Positions 10,369-17,969 of a DNA stretch of 64,000 nucleotides are shown here, piece after piece (the stretch's first letter is position 1; every line of letters begins with the position of its first letter). The position numbers and the translations under genes were made by a program. The notes under the pieces are model-generated. The model did not search any database, was not told the DNA's origin, and saw only the letters and a list, made by a program, of their open reading frames with translations. The DNA is taken from sequence record NC_049849.1. One strand, given 5' to 3'.

Positions 10369-11124
10369 ATGAACGATCTTCAGAAGAAAGCTCAGAAGTA
10401 CAAAACGCTTTTCAAGTTTGGTACCCTGGGCGTCATTCTTTTCGTGCTCGCACCCATTCTGTACACTGTGCTGCAAGCCACCGTCGCCGCAATCGCACTC
10501 GCGGTCATCGGCGGTACGACGTGGATGCTCACTCCGTATCTCTCGACCAAGTTCGCGAACATGCGGCTCAAGCTGGTGAAGGAAGCCGCGAAAGAGAACC
10601 CGATCGAAACTGCGCAACTCGAATTGCAGCGGCGTCGAGCAGAGCTGCAAGAGCGCAAAGCTGCCATTGAGAAGTGGGGCGGTTACGTGCAAGGCTACAT
10701 TCTGAAAGCCAAAGAGCAGGTCGACAAGTATCCGCACAAGAAGCAAGAGTACCTTGAGCGCATTCAGGGCATGCAGGCGTTGCATCAGCGTCGTGCTGAA
10801 CAGTGGCGTGAGACCCGCGCAGCCTTGGAAGTGTACGCCGCTCAAGTGCAAGAGAAGATCGACGAGTATGAAATGGCCAAGGAAGAACTCAAGGTCCGCG
10901 GCATGGTCGATGGCATGGACGAAGCCGACTTGTTCGCGCAGATCAAGATGGACGAAGCCATGAAGGAAATGACCAGCACGGTTGGTATGGCATTCTCCAG
11001 CCTCGAGTCCATTACGCATGACATGGACTACGATCATGAGAAGGGCAAGAAGCTGATCGCAAACAGCCCGACTCAGTCTCTGAACAACCTGGAAGTTATC
11101 GACGTTGAGGCAGTCCTGAAATGA
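10369..11124 (+). CDS. membrane-anchored PspA/IM30-like coiled-coil protein
   Basis: Two N-terminal TMs, then ENPIET and a long amphipathic coiled coil; context resembles yjfJ-type loci. Confidence 0.55.
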   Translation: MNDLQKKAQKYKTLFKFGTLGVILFVLAPILYTVLQATVAAIALAVIGGTTWMLTPYLSTKFANMRLKLVKEAAKENPIETAQLELQRRRAELQERKAAIEKWGGYVQGYILKAKEQVDKYPHKKQEYLERIQGMQALHQRRAEQWRETRAALEVYAAQVQEKIDEYEMAKEELKVRGMVDGMDEADLFAQIKMDEAMKEMTSTVGMAFSSLESITHDMDYDHEKGKKLIANSPTQSLNNLEVIDVEAVLK

Positions 11125-11255
11125 AAACCTGGATCATCGGTGCAGTTCTCATCGCCGCAGTCGTAGCACTCGGCTTCTTTGCCGGCAACAACTCTGTGCC
11201 TTCGGGCTCGAAGTCGCAGCCTTCGCAGTCTCAATCCAACAAGTACAAGTTCTAA
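11121..11255 (+). CDS. small membrane protein (44 aa, not in ORF track)
   Basis: Read by hand: MKTWIIGAVLIAAVVALGFFAGNNS...; ATGA overlap. Confidence 0.55.
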   Translation: MKTWIIGAVLIAAVVALGFFAGNNSVPSGSKSQPSQSQSNKYKF

Positions 11256-11281
11256 ACCAACCCCAACAAAAAGGAAATCAA

Positions 11282-12202
11282 ATGCGTATCACTCGTATCG
11301 TTGTCGCATCCCTTCTGTCTCTGGCAGCCTTCGCCGCTCATGCGCAACAGCTCAAGGTCGCTACCGGCGGTCCGCAAGGCACGTACTCGCAGATGTTCAA
11401 GGAAGTCGCACGAGTCTGCCAAGGTCAGATGAATCTGGTCGAGCAGAACACGTCGGGTTCGGTCGAGAACGTTGACCTGCTGGTCTCGAACAAGATCAAC
11501 GCAGCCATCGTGCAATCGGATGTGCTGAAGTTCCGGGCGCGCAACGAAGCGCAAATCTCGCAGCAAGTGCGCACGGTCTTCGGTCTCCACCCCGAAGAAA
11601 TTCACCTGGTGACTCGTGCGGATGGCCGCAAGGTCGGAGGCTACGGTTTCGGCAACTTCAAGTTCGGCGCCGAGCTGGTTGTGCTGCGTGACTTCCGCGA
11701 CATGGAAGGCAAGGTTGCTGGTGCAGTCGGCGGCTCGTATCTGACGGCGCAAGTCCTGGCCAACAACTCGGGTATCAGCTTCAACGTCGAGCAGTTCGGA
11801 TCGAACGATGACATGCTGCGCGCATTGGCTGAAGGCAAGATCGACGTTGCGGTCATGGTCATGGGTGCTCCTGCAAAGGCCATCACCGAAATGGGTCCCG
11901 AGTTCCGTCTGCTCCCGATTGAAGGGAAGCAAGTCGAAGCGTTGAAGGACTACTACGACGTGACGCGCCTGACCTACAACAACCTGAGCGACTCGCAAGG
12001 CGTTGCTGCTCTGTCGGTGCAAGCTCTGTTTGTCTCGCGCAACTACAAGACCGATGCAATGAAGAATGGTCTGAACACTCTGCGTGAATGCGTGTCCACG
12101 AAGCTGGATGAGCTGAAGGAAGAAATGGGTACGCATCCGAAGTGGCAGCAAGTCGAAGCCGGCCAGAATGGGAAGTGGCTGGTCTACAACAACGGTAACT
12201 AA
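11282..12202 (+). CDS. TAXI-family TRAP transporter solute-binding protein
   Basis: Signal peptide; ATGGPQGTY, TSGSVENV, AIVQSDV, LHPEEIHLV motifs typical of TAXI receptors. Confidence 0.85.
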   Translation: MRITRIVVASLLSLAAFAAHAQQLKVATGGPQGTYSQMFKEVARVCQGQMNLVEQNTSGSVENVDLLVSNKINAAIVQSDVLKFRARNEAQISQQVRTVFGLHPEEIHLVTRADGRKVGGYGFGNFKFGAELVVLRDFRDMEGKVAGAVGGSYLTAQVLANNSGISFNVEQFGSNDDMLRALAEGKIDVAVMVMGAPAKAITEMGPEFRLLPIEGKQVEALKDYYDVTRLTYNNLSDSQGVAALSVQALFVSRNYKTDAMKNGLNTLRECVSTKLDELKEEMGTHPKWQQVEAGQNGKWLVYNNGN

Positions 12203-12208
12203 GTAACG

Positions 12209-12245
12209 ATGGGCAGGGGCTGCGGTCTCTGCCCATTTTTCATTT
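12209..12245 (+). terminator. Rho-independent terminator
   Basis: ATGGGCAGGGGC-TGCG-GTCTCTGCCCAT then TTTTCATTT. Confidence 0.8.
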
Positions 12246-12266
12246 GTGGCATTCAAAGGACTAGAC

Positions 12267-13577
12267 ATGCAAGGTCGTAACGTATTCATCATCGGTTGTG
12301 GTTCCATTGGTCAGGGTCTGATCCCGCTGCTGTTCAAGCACTTCTATATGGAGCAGTCGCGAGTGGTCGTCATCACCGCCGATGAACGCGGCAAGGCTCT
12401 TGCTCAGTACTACGGCTGCTCGTTCCTGATCGAACCTCTCGGTCCTCTGAACTTTGAGTACGTGCTGGACAACGTTGGTCACAAGCCGGGCGACATTATG
12501 ATTAACGTCTCGGTCGATGTGTCGAGTATCGACCTCATGAACTACTGCAACGAGCATGGTCTGATGTATACCGATACATGCGTTGAGCCGTGGAGGGGTG
12601 GATATCAACAAGGCATGACCAACGCGGGACTGCGTACGGCGGCGCTGATGAGTCGTAAGATCGAGGACACTCCGACGGCCTTGATTGCACACGGGGCGAA
12701 TCCTGGGCTGGTTACGCACCTTCTGAAAGAAGGCTTGCGCGAACTCAGCTATGAGCGCCGTGTGATCTATGACCACGAAGCCACAGCGTTCAGCGCATTT
12801 GGATTTAAGGCGGTCCATATCGCAGAGCGTGACACGCAAGACAACGACGAAGAACGACCGAGTGGCAAATTCGTAAATACGTGGTCGGTAGACGGGCTTC
12901 TCAGCGAACTGTACCAGCAAGCTGAAATCGGCGTTGGCACTCACGAGCCTTTCAATCACAATATGTTTCCGACTTCGCGTATCAGTGCCAAGCTCCCTAC
13001 GCGCAGCGCAGATACCAAAGTCAAATCGTGGGTGCCTTCGGGTGGCGCACAAGACGCTTACTTGATTACGCATCACGAGTCCATTTCGCTTGCAGCGTTT
13101 CTTGAAGACTCGGACGGCAATCGACCTACGGTGCTGTACGCGTACAATCCGAGTCGGTTGACTCGCGAGTCCATTGAAGAATGGCGCGCTACTGGATTGC
13201 AAGAGCCGAAGCACAAGGAAGTCATGAAGGGCGTTACCCAAGGGTTTGACGAACTTGGCGTCCTGATGATCGGTCCGAGTCACAGCTACTGGTATGGGTC
13301 GAAGCTCTACGCAGAGGATGCGCGCAAGCTCATGCCGCAAGACTCCCTGCATTTGATTGAAGGTTTTAACGCAACGACGTTGCAGGTCACAGCCACCCTC
13401 ATCGGAGGTCTGAAGTGGATGCTGAAATGGCCCAACGAAGGTGTGGTAGAAGCTGAAGATATTGATAGCAGCTTGGTCCTCAAGTATGCTCATCAGTACA
13501 TCGGCGATGTGCGCGGTCACTTTACCGCATGGTCCTTTGGTAATTGTTCTTTCAACAACTTCTTGATTCAAAAATAA
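12267..13577 (+). CDS. hss: homospermidine synthase
   Basis: Rossmann IIGCGSIG; DTCVEPW, HGANPG, HIAERDTQ, FVNTWSVDG, ITHHES, DELGVL, NATTLQV motifs; AAAGGA SD before ATG 12267. Confidence 0.92.
   Translation: MQGRNVFIIGCGSIGQGLIPLLFKHFYMEQSRVVVITADERGKALAQYYGCSFLIEPLGPLNFEYVLDNVGHKPGDIMINVSVDVSSIDLMNYCNEHGLMYTDTCVEPWRGGYQQGMTNAGLRTAALMSRKIEDTPTALIAHGANPGLVTHLLKEGLRELSYERRVIYDHEATAFSAFGFKAVHIAERDTQDNDEERPSGKFVNTWSVDGLLSELYQQAEIGVGTHEPFNHNMFPTSRISAKLPTRSADTKVKSWVPSGGAQDAYLITHHESISLAAFLEDSDGNRPTVLYAYNPSRLTRESIEEWRATGLQEPKHKEVMKGVTQGFDELGVLMIGPSHSYWYGSKLYAEDARKLMPQDSLHLIEGFNATTLQVTATLIGGLKWMLKWPNEGVVEAEDIDSSLVLKYAHQYIGDVRGHFTAWSFGNCSFNNFLIQK
12871..12879 (+). promoter_or_regulatory. TCGTAAATA motif, intragenic copy in hss
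   Basis: Exact 9-mer; may be an internal promoter or chance. Confidence 0.25.
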
Positions 13578-13961
13578 ATGAAACGATCAGCGAAGATCAC
13601 CCTGGTACTTCTCGGCACGATGGCACTTACGGCGTGCGGCGATGGCAACGAGTCTCGTCAGACGACGCGCCAACAGTACAAAAGCATGGCCGACTGCCAA
13701 CGCGAATGGGGCACCGACAGTCGGAATTGCACAACCTCAAGCAGCGGCCACTTCTTTGGCCCGCTTTATTTCTGGAATCACTCGACGGGTACGCCGATGG
13801 TAGTGGGTGCGGGCGGTGAGACTCGCGCAGTTCCTAACGCCTATGCGAATCCGGCCAACAGTGCAGTAGCGCGCAGTTCTGCAATCAGCACTTCGACCAG
13901 CACCGCAATCGTCCGTGGCGGCTTCGGCAGCACCGGCTCTTCGTTCTCCGCAGGCGGCTGA
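13578..13961 (+). CDS. DUF1190-like (YgiB/YjfM-type) lipoprotein
   Basis: Lipobox LTAC; CQREWG..C; Ser/Thr/Gly-rich tail with RGGFG ending AGG; directly upstream of a GSP-synthetase-like gene. Confidence 0.8.
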   Translation: MKRSAKITLVLLGTMALTACGDGNESRQTTRQQYKSMADCQREWGTDSRNCTTSSSGHFFGPLYFWNHSTGTPMVVGAGGETRAVPNAYANPANSAVARSSAISTSTSTAIVRGGFGSTGSSFSAGG

Positions 13962-13964
13962 TAC

Positions 13965-15092
13965 ATGCAACGAGTCAAGGTTCAAGAGCGTGCCGACAAG
14001 GCAGACAAGCTGGAAGCGATCGGGCTTTCGTTCCATGCGTGGGATGACTACTGGAACGAGGGAGTCGCCTACAAGTTTGAGTCGGCAGAAATCGACAAGC
14101 TCGAAGCCGCAGCCAATGAACTGCATGGCATGTGTTTGAACGCAGCGCGCTATGCGATCAATCACAACCGCCTCGGCCAGATGGGAATTCCCGAGCAGTT
14201 CCATGAAGCGATTCGCCAGTCGTTCGACCGCAACGAGTTCTCGCTGTACGGCCGCTTCGACTTCGCGTTCGACGGCGATCAAATCAAGATGCTCGAGTAC
14301 AACGCAGACACTCCGACCTCGCTGTTGGAATCCGCGGTGGCTCAGTGGGACTGGATGGAAGAAGTCAAGCCTGGCACCGATCAGTTCAACAGCCTGCATG
14401 AGCGACTGATCGAGCAGTGGCAGAAGTTCCGCGGTGCGAAGAAAGTCTACTTTGCGTCGTTGCGCGACAACGAAGAAGACTGGGTCTGCGTTCACTACAT
14501 GATGGACACAGCCGCGCAAGCTGGCTTGGAAGTTCAGCACATCTGGCTGGATGATATCGGCTACGATCCGATGAACCAAGTCTTCGTTGACGACCGCAAC
14601 CGACCCATCGAAGCGCTGTTCAAGCTCTACCCGTGGGAATGGTTGATGCGTGAGGACTTCGCGCAGTACTTAACGACGACCAAGACCCAGTTCGTTGAAC
14701 CCATCTGGAAGTCGGTGTTGTCGAACAAGGCGCTGCTGCCGATCTTGTGGGAAGTCTACCGCGATCATCCGCTGCTGTTGCCGTCGTACTTCGAAGCCGA
14801 CAAGCTCAAGTCGTTTGCCAAGAAGCCTTTCTTTTCGCGTGAAGGTGCCAACGTCGAACTGCATGAGAATGGCTTGATGCAGGACTTCGACACCGGACCG
14901 TATGGTGCTGAAGGTTACATCTACCAGCAGCTGATCCAGCTTCCCAAGTTCGACGACGTGTATCCGATCATCGGTGCGTGGATCGTGGGTGAAGAGTCGG
15001 CTGGTATCTGCATCCGCGAAGATCGGCTGCGCATCACCACCAACATGAGCCACTTCATTCCGCACTACTTCACCGACAACGAGGAAGCATGA
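13965..15092 (+). CDS. glutathionylspermidine synthetase-like ATP-grasp ligase (YgiC/YjfC type, no amidase domain)
   Basis: LYGRFDF, MLEYNADTPTSLLES, QFNSLHE, FKLYPWEW, EPIWKSVLSNKALL, KPFFSREGANV motifs. Confidence 0.92.
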   Translation: MQRVKVQERADKADKLEAIGLSFHAWDDYWNEGVAYKFESAEIDKLEAAANELHGMCLNAARYAINHNRLGQMGIPEQFHEAIRQSFDRNEFSLYGRFDFAFDGDQIKMLEYNADTPTSLLESAVAQWDWMEEVKPGTDQFNSLHERLIEQWQKFRGAKKVYFASLRDNEEDWVCVHYMMDTAAQAGLEVQHIWLDDIGYDPMNQVFVDDRNRPIEALFKLYPWEWLMREDFAQYLTTTKTQFVEPIWKSVLSNKALLPILWEVYRDHPLLLPSYFEADKLKSFAKKPFFSREGANVELHENGLMQDFDTGPYGAEGYIYQQLIQLPKFDDVYPIIGAWIVGEESAGICIREDRLRITTNMSHFIPHYFTDNEEA

Positions 15093-15364
15093 GCGCCCTA
15101 CAGACCCTGAACGAACTTCGTGCGCGTGTACATCTGCGCACTCGTGTCCTGCCAAATATCATCGACGCCGCAAAGCGTATGATGACGCTTGGCGCTTCGG
15201 TAGAAGAAGTCAATGAGCTGCTCGACGCTTTCGGCTACGAAGGCATGAAGGTCAAGCTTACCGCAGAGGATCAACGAGACACGTACGCTCTGTCGGCTAC
15301 CTTCATGGGCTACACGGAAGTCAAGCTCTTCGAAGTGGTAACCGTCGATGACGAAGCTGCATAG
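15089..15364 (+). CDS. hypothetical protein
   Basis: ATGA overlap; GAGGAAG SD. Confidence 0.6.
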   Translation: MSALQTLNELRARVHLRTRVLPNIIDAAKRMMTLGASVEEVNELLDAFGYEGMKVKLTAEDQRDTYALSATFMGYTEVKLFEVVTVDDEAA

Positions 15365-15473
15365 ATTTTTCGCCATCATCTTGCTTGGCATCGCTATCGT
15401 TTACATAGCGTACGGTGCAAGCATAACCGCATATCTGTTTTTCAAAATCTACAACCTACTGGAGCAATCCCGC

Positions 15474-15860
15474 ATGGCAAACATCCTGAATACCTTCCTG
15501 TACTTCTTCACGTCGCTGGCTATGCTGGCACTGTTCATGGTCGTTTACGAGAAGGTCACGCCGTATCGTGAATGGGTCGAAATCAAGAACGGCAACACCG
15601 CGGCGGCTATCGCATTCGGCGGCGCGCTGATCGGCTTTGTTCTCCCGCTGTGGTCCGTCATCATGAGCACGCACTCGGTGCTCGAAGTCATCAAGTGGGG
15701 CTTCCTGGTCGGTGCCATTCAAATCGTTTCGTTCCTGGTCATTCATCGTCTGCGCGGCTTCGGCGACTGCGTACGTGAGGGTCGAGTGTCGAGCGCGACG
15801 TTCCTGGCTTTCGCATCCATTGCTATCGGCATCATCAACGCAGCTTCGATCAGCTACTGA
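15474..15860 (+). CDS. DUF350 (YjfL-type) membrane protein
   Basis: Four TMs; VYEKVTPYREWVEIKNGNTAAAIAFGGALIG signature; GGAG SD before ATG 15474. Confidence 0.85.
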   Translation: MANILNTFLYFFTSLAMLALFMVVYEKVTPYREWVEIKNGNTAAAIAFGGALIGFVLPLWSVIMSTHSVLEVIKWGFLVGAIQIVSFLVIHRLRGFGDCVREGRVSSATFLAFASIAIGIINAASISY

Positions 15861-15863
15861 ACC

Positions 15864-16124
15864 ATGCAACTTCCCGACAATCGCTTTACTGCAGAGGAAG
15901 CCCGCGCCAAGATGGCAGAGGCTTTCAAGATCAACCCGCGCAAGGTCATGCTGGAGCTACGCAGAGCATACGGCCTGATTGAGCAGGACATAGCCAAGGG
16001 GTCAGTGGCCTTCTTGATTCGAGGTTCTGCCATGCGTGAAGCCGTAGCAGAGCAACTGCGCAAGGATGGTTACACGGTCTCGCTGTGTGCGAGTTCTGAC
16101 AAGATCATCGTCTACTGGAAGTAA
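15864..16124 (+). CDS. hypothetical protein
   Basis: Last ORF before the terminator. Confidence 0.6.
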   Translation: MQLPDNRFTAEEARAKMAEAFKINPRKVMLELRRAYGLIEQDIAKGSVAFLIRGSAMREAVAEQLRKDGYTVSLCASSDKIIVYWK

Positions 16125-16130
16125 AGCAAT

Positions 16131-16158
16131 GGGTGGGGCCTTCGGGTCTCACCCTTTT
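16131..16158 (+). terminator. Rho-independent terminator
   Basis: GGGTGGGGCC-TTCG-GGTCTCACCC-TTTT (cUUCGg loop). Confidence 0.8.
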
Positions 16159-16187
16159 CGTACATCTATAGAACACTAGATACCAAA

Positions 16188-17969
16188 ATGAGCAAACGTT
16201 ATCAACGTGGTAATCTGTCGCAGGTTCAAACGCAAACGACGGCTCAAGCCGTGCCTGCGCTGCCGACACTACAACATCAAAAGCTGCCCGATAACAAATA
16301 CCACTACTGCACGAACTCCTGGTTCGATCAGCAGTTTCGCAAAGTCTCTAGCAGTACCGACACGCTCAAGGCCATGACGCCTCTGGCGATCCTACGCGAA
16401 GCCGAAGGTATTGAGCCTGTGTCTTCGACTGCACTCCGTATTGCAAAGACAGACTGGTCTGGTCGCGAGCAGTTCATCCTGTCCAGTGGCTGCCGCCTGG
16501 GTAAGAACACGCTTATGCGGGAACTGATGAAAGACTATCAGAGGGATGCGCTGGTAACTCTTGACTCGTGTCCGCCTATCATAACGGGTGAGCTTGGCAC
16601 GCTCGAAGGCGTGACCATCACTCATGGCGTAAAGCAGCTCGCAGAAACCCCAGCTTTTCAAAATGCTGTTAGCCGGCCGATGGTACTGACTATGGACCCA
16701 GGCACTTCGTTGAACGACATTCACGAGTATGGTTTGTACTCGGTGGGCAGCGGCTTGATTGCCACGAATAGCCCGATTCAAGGTGCATCAGTGGACAGCA
16801 CTTCCTACTGGTCTCACATATTCGACGGATTCGACGAAGACCTACAGATTCGACGTGAGGCAGTTCGTCAGCGCGCAGTCAATCAAATTCTCAACGACGA
16901 GCAAGCACGCGGTCGACTGAATCGAGCTACTATCGGATTCGCACAACCGCACATCATGCAGATACCCCGCGAGCGGATGGACGACTACTTTTACAGTATG
17001 CGTGCCTTCAGCCGTGAAGGCAGTCTCCTGAGTGAGTCGCTTCCTGGAGACCCTGTTAAGGATCGCCGCGAACGTCCAAAGAATCCGATCAACGTTGACA
17101 CCTTGAAAGAGGCGATCACCAAGGCGGTAGCTGCGTGGAGTCCCGAGATTCAGAAGTGGATGCTGAGTACCGCGTTCAATTGGGCACGGTCCAATCTCGA
17201 AACTGCGTTCTATCGAAATACGGAGTCCGAAAAGAAGAACGCCCCCGACTGGGTGCAAGCTGCTTGGGATCGGGGCGACAACTTGGTACGCTTCGATGTG
17301 ACTCGTTGGATGCACCCCACTGCATGGAATGAGGTATCGACTCGCAATTTTCAGGACCTCATCAATACGATTTCTGTCAAAGACGATTCGATTTGGCACG
17401 CAGCGGGCAGCATATCAGTTCATTCGCTGCGTACTCAGCTAACTGCTCTCGGTCTGTATTTCCAACAGTGCCGCTCGGAACTTCCCGCTGACCTCACCCA
17501 TATCTCATATGAAGATGCGCGCAAGAAAGCAAAAGAATGGTTCGAGGCCTCGGCGTATCAGAAGGTTCTGAATCGTCGCCTGGAGCAAGAGGTGTGGTTC
17601 TCTGTCTTCAAGAATGGCAAAGCATTCAACGTCGTACCACTGCACACGCGTGAGTCTTTTGAGGATGAGCACGTTGCCAATCGCGTGTGCATCAACAACT
17701 CAGAGTACCGTCAGCGCAGCAACGAAACGGGTGCCATTTATCTGTCGGTGCGTGATGCTGAGACTGGCGAAGGCTGCCTGACTATCGAACTGCGTACAGA
17801 GCATGGCGAGCCCAAGTTCAAGGGCGGAAAAATTCAACGCGAAGTCAGCTATCAGGGCGAAGCTATCTCGCACACCGGCAACATCTATGCTGCGAAGTAC
17901 GAATGCTTGGTGGTGCAAATTGAGAAGCACCTTGGCATTCCCTTGACTCACCTCTACTGCCAGGACTAA
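16188..17969 (+). CDS. large protein with C-terminal PcfJ-like domain
   Basis: 593 aa; C-terminal SYEDARKKAKEW...PLHTRESFEDEHVANRVCI...IYLSVRD...TIEL resembles PcfJ-like domains. Confidence 0.55.
   Translation: MSKRYQRGNLSQVQTQTTAQAVPALPTLQHQKLPDNKYHYCTNSWFDQQFRKVSSSTDTLKAMTPLAILREAEGIEPVSSTALRIAKTDWSGREQFILSSGCRLGKNTLMRELMKDYQRDALVTLDSCPPIITGELGTLEGVTITHGVKQLAETPAFQNAVSRPMVLTMDPGTSLNDIHEYGLYSVGSGLIATNSPIQGASVDSTSYWSHIFDGFDEDLQIRREAVRQRAVNQILNDEQARGRLNRATIGFAQPHIMQIPRERMDDYFYSMRAFSREGSLLSESLPGDPVKDRRERPKNPINVDTLKEAITKAVAAWSPEIQKWMLSTAFNWARSNLETAFYRNTESEKKNAPDWVQAAWDRGDNLVRFDVTRWMHPTAWNEVSTRNFQDLINTISVKDDSIWHAAGSISVHSLRTQLTALGLYFQQCRSELPADLTHISYEDARKKAKEWFEASAYQKVLNRRLEQEVWFSVFKNGKAFNVVPLHTRESFEDEHVANRVCINNSEYRQRSNETGAIYLSVRDAETGEGCLTIELRTEHGEPKFKGGKIQREVSYQGEAISHTGNIYAAKYECLVVQIEKHLGIPLTHLYCQD

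Follow-up and report, generated by a model that had tools for sequence, protein, structure and literature searches.

Glutathionylspermidine synthetase (Gss) and trypanothione synthetase (TryS) activate a C-terminal glycine carboxylate, in the case of Gss that of glutathione, and then amidate it with a polyamine. Pairs of a carboxylate-activating enzyme and a small protein with a conserved, flexible C-terminal tail are likewise familiar from ATP-grasp or related ligases acting on the C-terminal ends of proteins: RimK and S6, LysX and LysW, tubulin tyrosine ligase and its substrate tubulin, and PafA and Pup. To our knowledge, the substrates in all of these pairs, as well as SUMO and ubiquitin, are cytoplasmic. 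C-terminal glycine-spermidine amides have been shown on SUMO and ubiquitin in eukaryotes, where they are made by E1/E2 enzymes; an amide between a C-terminal glycine and a polyamine thus exists on a protein. In Escherichia coli, YgiC and YjfC, both named ‘peptide--spermidine ligase’ in RefSeq, ligate spermidine to free peptides in vitro according to a 2025 review, which says of YgiC that ‘the physiological substrate remains unknown’. The review credits YgiC with peptide-spermidine ligase activity, citing Pederick et al. (2023), and with no glutathionylspermidine (GSP) synthetase activity; that both YgiC and YjfC lack the latter is reported with reference to Sui (2012). Here, we compare these systems with a locus of Achromobacter phage Motura (MN094788), a jumbo phage of 221 kb. 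The locus lies in a stretch of 64,000 nucleotides (nt) from sequence record NC_049849.1, which we refer to as the window and whose numbering we use; its positions 11000–17000 are 100% identical to the phage record, and all features described in it are on the plus strand. Within it, a gene for a small lipoprotein (13578..13961) precedes a gene for a YgiC/YjfC-type ATP-grasp ligase (13965..15092), and we consider the C-terminal tail of the lipoprotein a good, though unproven, candidate substrate of this ligase.

The ligase is a protein of 375 amino acids (aa), annotated as ‘glutathionylspermidine synthase’. It shares the ATP-grasp GSP_synth domain with Gss and TryS and matches the corresponding Pfam profile (PF03738) with 480.6 bits against a cut-off of 29.3, over profile positions 3–371 of 371. 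The nearest solved structures are E. coli YgiC (7UK8, E 2.7e-94) and YjfC (7UK6, E 2e-85), to which it aligns over its full length (residues 1–370), whereas its similarity to Gss is much weaker: a PDB sequence search matches Gss in two partial stretches (E 3e-32), the matches to Gss and TryS taken together are partial and range from E 1e-32 to 1e-41, and the NCBIfam Gss model reaches 161.9 bits, far below its cut-off of 882. Neither Pfam nor NCBIfam nor the PDB sequence search reveals the amidase (CHAP) domain of Gss in the Motura protein, and with this domain missing we rejected its assignment to the bifunctional Gss enzymes. That it is an ATP-grasp enzyme with the peptide-spermidine ligases YgiC and YjfC of E. 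coli as its nearest relatives is well supported by these comparisons and agrees with what a first-pass annotation of the window had proposed. Likewise in line with that annotation, the ligase looks cytoplasmic: it lacks a signal sequence, and the E. coli orthologues are soluble proteins that have been crystallised. Like the E. coli enzymes, for which this activity is reported, the Motura ligase may use ATP to join polyamines to the C-termini of peptides.

The lipoprotein gene encodes 127 aa. Its start codon directly abuts the stop codon (13575–13577) of hss, the gene for homospermidine synthase (HSS), and its own stop codon (13959–13961) is followed by a TAC triplet and the ligase ATG at 13965, which leaves a gap of 3 nt. 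Its sequence reads as a signal peptide (13578..13637) with a lipobox L-T-A-C, in which Cys20 (13635–13637) is the predicted lipidation site. At the other end, the tail that we regard as a candidate acyl substrate (13914..13958) comprises the motif RGGFG (residues 113–117, 13914–13928) and ten further residues, namely eight Ser/Gly-rich ones and a terminal Gly-Gly, followed by TGA. A low-complexity tail that runs into Gly-Gly and a stop codon 3 nt before the ligase had been noted earlier, and both the open reading frame (ORF) at 13578–13961 and the ligase start confirm it. In E. coli, the pairs YgiB–YgiC and YjfM–YjfC display the same gene order and a similarly tight junction: ygiB (DUF1190) stops 5 nt before ygiC, while yjfL (DUF350), yjfM (DUF1190) and yjfC are consecutive. 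YgiB and YjfM have the signal, the Cys pair, the RGG[FY]G motif and the GG end in common with the Motura lipoprotein, but are considerably longer (212–223 aa). The Motura module further differs from its E. coli counterparts in the addition of hss, with homospermidine as the probable amine, in being virus-borne and in lacking yjfI/J/K partners. In E. coli, ygiB also adjoins tolC.

On the Pfam DUF1190 profile, the Motura lipoprotein scores 20.9 bits, which is just under the gathering cut-off of 22 and outside the family by that threshold. The same profile misses the betaproteobacterial short forms in G001–G003 as well, finding only the long alphaproteobacterial form. The homology to DUF1190 rests instead on our own profile, which yields 919 matches at E<=1e-3, including representatives recorded under PF06693 such as P0111. 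The features of the family, that is, the signal, a Cys pair with a Trp, a GP-Y-W segment, RGG[FY]G and a short Gly/Ser tail, are all present in the Motura protein, and YgiB and YjfM carry the same motifs. In an alignment of 112 sequences, Y34, C40, W44, C51, P62, G115 and G117 are invariant. A class-wide search with profile A1 detected the short form in a single genome out of 201, too sparse a distribution for an analysis of phyletic co-occurrence. A lipobox-like site is found in 128 of the 150 family representatives considered below. The signal region is unusually conserved for a signal (M-K-R-S-x-x-V-x-L-V-L-L-G; window 13578–13637, alignment A3), and about 15% of the family representatives keep this segment without the lipobox Cys, which suggests a signal-anchor form or a second role.

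Wherever the surroundings of related ligase genes could be judged, a gene for such a lipoprotein accompanies them. A profile scan of metagenome contigs yielded 80 loci with ligases 43–60% identical to that of Motura, of which 67 extend 400 nt or more upstream of the ligase and were judged. All 67 have a DUF1190-like gene beside the ligase, as do 18 further pairs. In 63 of the 67, a tail-bearing ORF lies directly upstream; in the remaining four, a DUF1190-like gene is nearby, either downstream of the ligase (L082), separated from it by an ORF for a GNAT-like acetyltransferase (L043:1970-2500), or in the form of weaker, divergent copies (L069, L101). The GNAT-like protein may be another polyamine-handling enzyme of the module. 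The same arrangement, with a signal-bearing ORF and an RGGFG tail directly upstream, recurs in 12 of 12 bacterial genome loci with the ligase, and a tail-bearing lipoprotein gene (ORF051) directly precedes the ligase gene in Ralstonia phage phiRSL1. Seen from the lipoprotein side, five of six representatives that were looked up adjoin a GSP_synth gene, and in the sixth (P0111) the next gene is incomplete at the contig end. The junction is mostly tight, with a stop-to-start gap of at most 6 nt in 60 of 81 pairs. A word-index protein search returned only two relatives, and a scan of viral contigs with the ligase gave no match. Across the samples judged, from Proteobacteria and phages, the lipoprotein gene is a universal neighbour of the ligase.

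The tail itself was analysed in the best 150 of the 919 cluster representatives, which came from a profile search of 1.84 billion representatives at E<=1e-3. R[GS]GFG is present in 147 of the 150, and the stretch past it measures 10 aa in 76 and 9–11 aa in 116 of them. Counted from the C-terminus, position -1 is Gly (76%) or Ser (22%), position -2 is Gly (90%) and position -4 is Ser (80%). GG ends number 108 where 7 would be expected from the tail composition, though the rows are related sequences and the p-value is therefore indicative only; among the nearest representatives, the share of GG ends is 73%. By this pattern, the tail is a motif anchored to the free C-terminus, beyond chance low complexity, and a family consensus of RGGFG, about ten Ser/Gly-rich residues and a small last residue (Gly or Ser) is well supported by the alignments. 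An AlphaFold2 model based on 112 homologues has a confident folded core at residues 27–106, with a predicted local distance difference test score (pLDDT) of 84–94, while the pLDDT falls below 50 at residues 111–121 and averages 46–50 beyond residue 110. The tail is thus predicted to be disordered or flexible and should therefore be accessible. Searches with the model produced no convincing fold relatives (best E 1.1 in Foldseek, best Z 3.5 in VIA-align). We also considered a ubiquitin-like or ThiS/MoaD-type Gly-Gly carrier and rejected it, as there is no beta-grasp fold match, GG is not invariant, and the partner is an ATP-grasp enzyme rather than an E1. A tail of a distinct type was observed in a low-GC clade (L049, L058, L084, L087, L088, L096, L103), whose members have uniform 8-residue tails ending in -V-S-S and gaps of 8–112 nt before the ligase.

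The universal adjacency, the tight junction, the flexible tail anchored to the C-terminus and an enzyme family reported to amidate peptides with spermidine all speak in favour of the tail as the site of amidation. We tentatively propose that, prior to export, a polyamine is attached to its C-terminal carboxylate as an amide, which we regard as quite possible. Because the pre-lipoprotein is only 127 aa long, and would thus be exported after translation, its full-length form would be briefly cytoplasmic. The ligase would dock on the RGGFG motif, phosphorylate the terminal α-carboxylate with ATP and amidate it with homospermidine supplied by the neighbouring hss; where a host has no hss, spermidine or putrescine would serve as the amine. 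Export by the Sec pathway and lipidation would follow, leaving the polyamine covalently tethered in the cell envelope. The linkage to hss is seen only in the clade of Motura, while the lipoprotein is constant, and this distribution agrees with an amine that varies and an acyl partner that does not. Amidation, by blocking the free carboxylate, could conceivably also shield the tail from a protease such as the tail-specific protease Tsp. Like SUMO-spermidine, the product would be a protein amidated at its tail; unlike the cytoplasmic substrates named at the outset, the Motura candidate is a predicted Sec-exported lipoprotein, and it has neither a beta-grasp fold match nor an E1-like enzyme. A broader version of this proposal, according to which it describes a new bacterial modification that also operates in YgiB/YgiC and YjfM/YjfC of E. 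coli and was captured by the phage together with hss to condition the host envelope, appears rather unlikely to us.

Several observations weigh against tail amidation. The lipoprotein, with its Sec/lipobox signal and conserved Cys pair, is predicted to be periplasmic, and the ligase to be cytoplasmic and in need of ATP. The modification would consequently have to outrun export on a short-lived cytoplasmic precursor, which is conceivable for a protein of 127 aa, and we know of few precedents for it. Moreover, only 33 of the 81 ligase-linked pairs have a GG end, as opposed to 40 with x-Ser, 3 with x-Gly and 5 with other ends (Glu, Leu, Ala). The two closest relatives of the lipoprotein (54–56% identical) end in -AAS, with a stop confirmed by the DNA, and one of them comes from a cassette identical to that of Motura. 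On the ligase tree, at least 12 switches between GG and non-GG ends are required, 8 of them on well-supported branches, and no ligase column covaries with the terminal residue (GG versus other) beyond chance across 8 independent sister pairs, the observed maximum being 8 and the simulated maxima 6–8. Finally, the codons for the last Gly residues fall in part within the Shine-Dalgarno site of the ligase gene. Together, these points weaken the argument from a glutathione-like Gly-Gly. The first-pass annotation had singled out the terminal GG as a feature to be sought in ligase-linked homologues: it is kept in 21 of the 23 members of Motura's own clade (support 99 on the ligase tree), and absent from the majority of the 81 pairs. 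As the last residue is nonetheless Gly, Ser or Ala in about 96% of these pairs, and near-identical sister lipoproteins differ at their end merely by Gly or Ser, the constraint seen in the alignments is for a small last residue, and not specifically for Gly as in glutathione or ubiquitin. The overlap with the ribosome-binding site raises the question of whether the terminal Gly-Gly arises chiefly from dual coding, its GGN GGN codons serving to carry the ribosome-binding site of the ligase. Indeed, 32 of the 33 GG-ending genes stop at most 6 nt before the ligase start, and only 1 of 19 metagenome loci with gaps of at least 7 nt ends in GG; the last codons contain GGAGG/GGGGG strings, GGGAGG or GGGGAGG at several loci including E. 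coli yjfM, and a Shine-Dalgarno-like match of at least 4 nt is present in 44% of the tight GG junctions, compared to 22% of the tight xS junctions. Yet the commonest codon pair is GGCGGC (12/33), which makes a poor Shine-Dalgarno sequence, GG ends also occur in L082, whose lipoprotein gene comes after that of the ligase, and in L081 with its gap of 24 nt, and independent tree contrasts between GG and a tight junction are not significant in what is an under-powered test. Dual coding may therefore add to the preference for GG, but it cannot account for the RGGFG motif, the Ser at -4 or the fixed tail length, and as the main cause of the GG end we deem it improbable.

A different substrate altogether would remove the problem of compartments. 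The ligase might join the polyamine to some other cytoplasmic peptide or metabolite, for example a murein peptide, while the DUF350 protein and the lipoprotein act as envelope partners that handle, sense or bind the product or the polyamine; the tail would then have a periplasmic role in partner binding, metal binding or recognition by a tail-specific protease. We consider this possible, if somewhat doubtful. It calls for no special kinetics, it agrees with the use of free peptides by YgiC and YjfC in vitro and with the variation of the terminal residue, and many operons encode a cytoplasmic enzyme together with a membrane protein and a lipoprotein. A PSP survey (PMC11237479) describes an operon type consisting of an ATP-grasp peptide ligase, DUF350 and a ‘metal-chelating lipoprotein (DUF1190)’, which it reads as an envelope-stress operon. 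Published observations that ygiB is Cpx-regulated and that YgiB is up 3–4 fold in an E. coli tsp mutant can be counted on the same side, although both simply fit an envelope role and do not discriminate among the readings. On the other hand, a substrate elsewhere in the cytoplasm is not named by this explanation, which also leaves unexplained why the tail motif keeps a fixed distance from a free, small C-terminal residue, and why the close and universal link to the ligase gene involves the lipoprotein gene rather than that of DUF350. A third explanation follows the existing annotation. The hss–‘gss’ cluster of Motura is already published: Li et al. (2023; PMC9992855) reported that Motura hss clusters with a gss homologue, as it does in Betaproteobacteria, and proposed glutathionylhomospermidine as the product, without discussing the lipoprotein, be it as a substrate or otherwise. 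A true glutathionyl(homo)spermidine synthetase would agree with the annotation, the PHROG name and the common GSP_synth domain. However, the ligase is far closer to YgiC and YjfC than to Gss and has no amidase domain, and the obligatory lipoprotein neighbour would be left without a reason; since the enzyme resembles YgiC and YjfC, and these are reported, in papers citing Sui (2012), not to use glutathione, we judge this explanation highly improbable. The earlier suggestion that the tail is a polyamine acceptor thus survives in part: the constant neighbourhood and the conserved, disordered tail anchored to the C-terminus support it, whereas the argument from a terminal Gly has lost weight through the -AAS and Ser ends.

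A literature search found no paper proposing the lipoprotein tail as a substrate of the ligase, with the full text of Pederick 2023 lying outside that search. As far as it reached, a polyamine-amidated lipoprotein tail is a new idea, and one that is moderately supported; new here are also the universal DUF1190-like neighbour, the tail motif anchored to the C-terminus and its predicted disorder. For YgiC and YjfC, in-vitro chemistry and structures are at hand while the physiological substrate is described as unknown, and the tail offers a concrete candidate that can be tested, also in E. coli. Should the proposal be true, it would add a new type to the known protein modifications and show how polyamines can be kept fixed in the envelope, and it would explain why polyamine genes stand beside those of envelope proteins in jumbo phages. 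Should it be wrong, the conserved tail would still mark a functional element of DUF1190 in need of an explanation.

With regard to its origin, the closest match to the Motura module is found in betaproteobacterial operons (Zoogloea, Limnohabitans, Acidovorax; L003–L010), which have the identical order hss–DUF1190–ligase–DUF350, ligases 56–60% identical to Motura's and tails ending in -GG. In addition to what these operons contain, the phage has a gene for a TAXI-like binding protein and ORFs of 91 and 86 aa. On the ligase tree, Motura forms a clade with phiRSL1 and L017 (support 96) that is nested inside the 23-member group, and the best explanation is that its module of hss, short DUF1190 lipoprotein, YgiC/YjfC-type ligase and DUF350 was copied from such operons. 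PhiRSL1 is the sole other phage record to match the DNA of window 11000–17000, where only the ligase gene aligns (67.6% identity). L017:4638-8230, part of a Logan contig (SRR14005095, 35.8 kb), carries hss, lipoprotein, ligase, a small ORF and DUF350 as in Motura. This uncultured contig has many small unannotated ORFs and is putatively from a phage; the ligase it encodes groups as sister to the Motura and phiRSL1 enzymes, and the lipoprotein has an -AAS end in place of -AGG.

The genes around the pair are labelled in GenBank, in order, as transporter substrate-binding protein, homospermidine synthase, hypothetical protein, glutathionylspermidine synthase and hypothetical proteins. The hss gene (12267..13577 with the start given in GenBank; an alternative GTG is at 12246) encodes both saccharopine-dehydrogenase-like domains (Pfam Sacchrp_dh_NADP and Sacchrp_dh_C) and matches solved bacterial HSS structures over residues 6–423 (2PH5, E 5.9e-82; 4PLP, E 7e-73). 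That its product is a close homologue of these enzymes is well supported, and its activity can be predicted by similarity; the HSS of phiRSL1 has been reported to be functional (PMC9992855). Of 64 related loci, only 11 have hss directly upstream, all within Motura's own clade; by tblastn, 43 of the 73 loci with room for it have a DUF350 gene after the ligase. In Motura, this gene (15348..15860) encodes a YjfL-like inner-membrane protein of 170 aa (PF03994, E 4e-33), and between it and the ligase lies the 91-aa ORF (15089..15364), whose start overlaps the ligase stop and whose membership in the module is putative. The 91-aa ORF has no match in Pfam, NCBIfam or PHROG, and none by tblastn in the 80 related loci. 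Upstream of hss, a TAXI/NMT1-like periplasmic solute-binding protein (11282..12202) has a clear Sec signal and matches PF16868 (E 1e-12) and phrog_6856, with TIGR02122 below its cut-off. Further upstream, a 251-aa protein (10369-11124) with an N-terminal hydrophobic segment and a long coiled coil has phrog_27316 as its only match; we rejected a PspA-like reading of this ORF, which found no support from Pfam, NCBIfam, BLASTP against E. coli YjfJ or the PDB sequence search. By tblastn, the TAXI-like protein, the 251-aa protein, the 91-aa ORF and the 86-aa ORF have no counterpart in the related loci, and by this comparison the TAXI/NMT1-like protein is a neighbour rather than a part of the conserved bacterial module.

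Two further observations concern the joining of these genes. The lipoprotein and ligase ORFs share a reading frame and are separated by TGA-TAC only, so that readthrough of the stop codon would yield a fusion, of which there is no sign. We rejected such a fusion as a single chain, as the genome shows no genetic code of this kind and the fusion would have no free C-terminus at the tail. Natural fusions of another type exist in P0023 (593 aa) and P0053 (578 aa), which combine a homospermidine synthase with a complete DUF1190 unit, the signal/lipobox segment being internal. P0023 was found in two independent samples, with the genes for the ligase and DUF350 coming next. Such a fusion would anchor HSS at the membrane, beside the lipoprotein.

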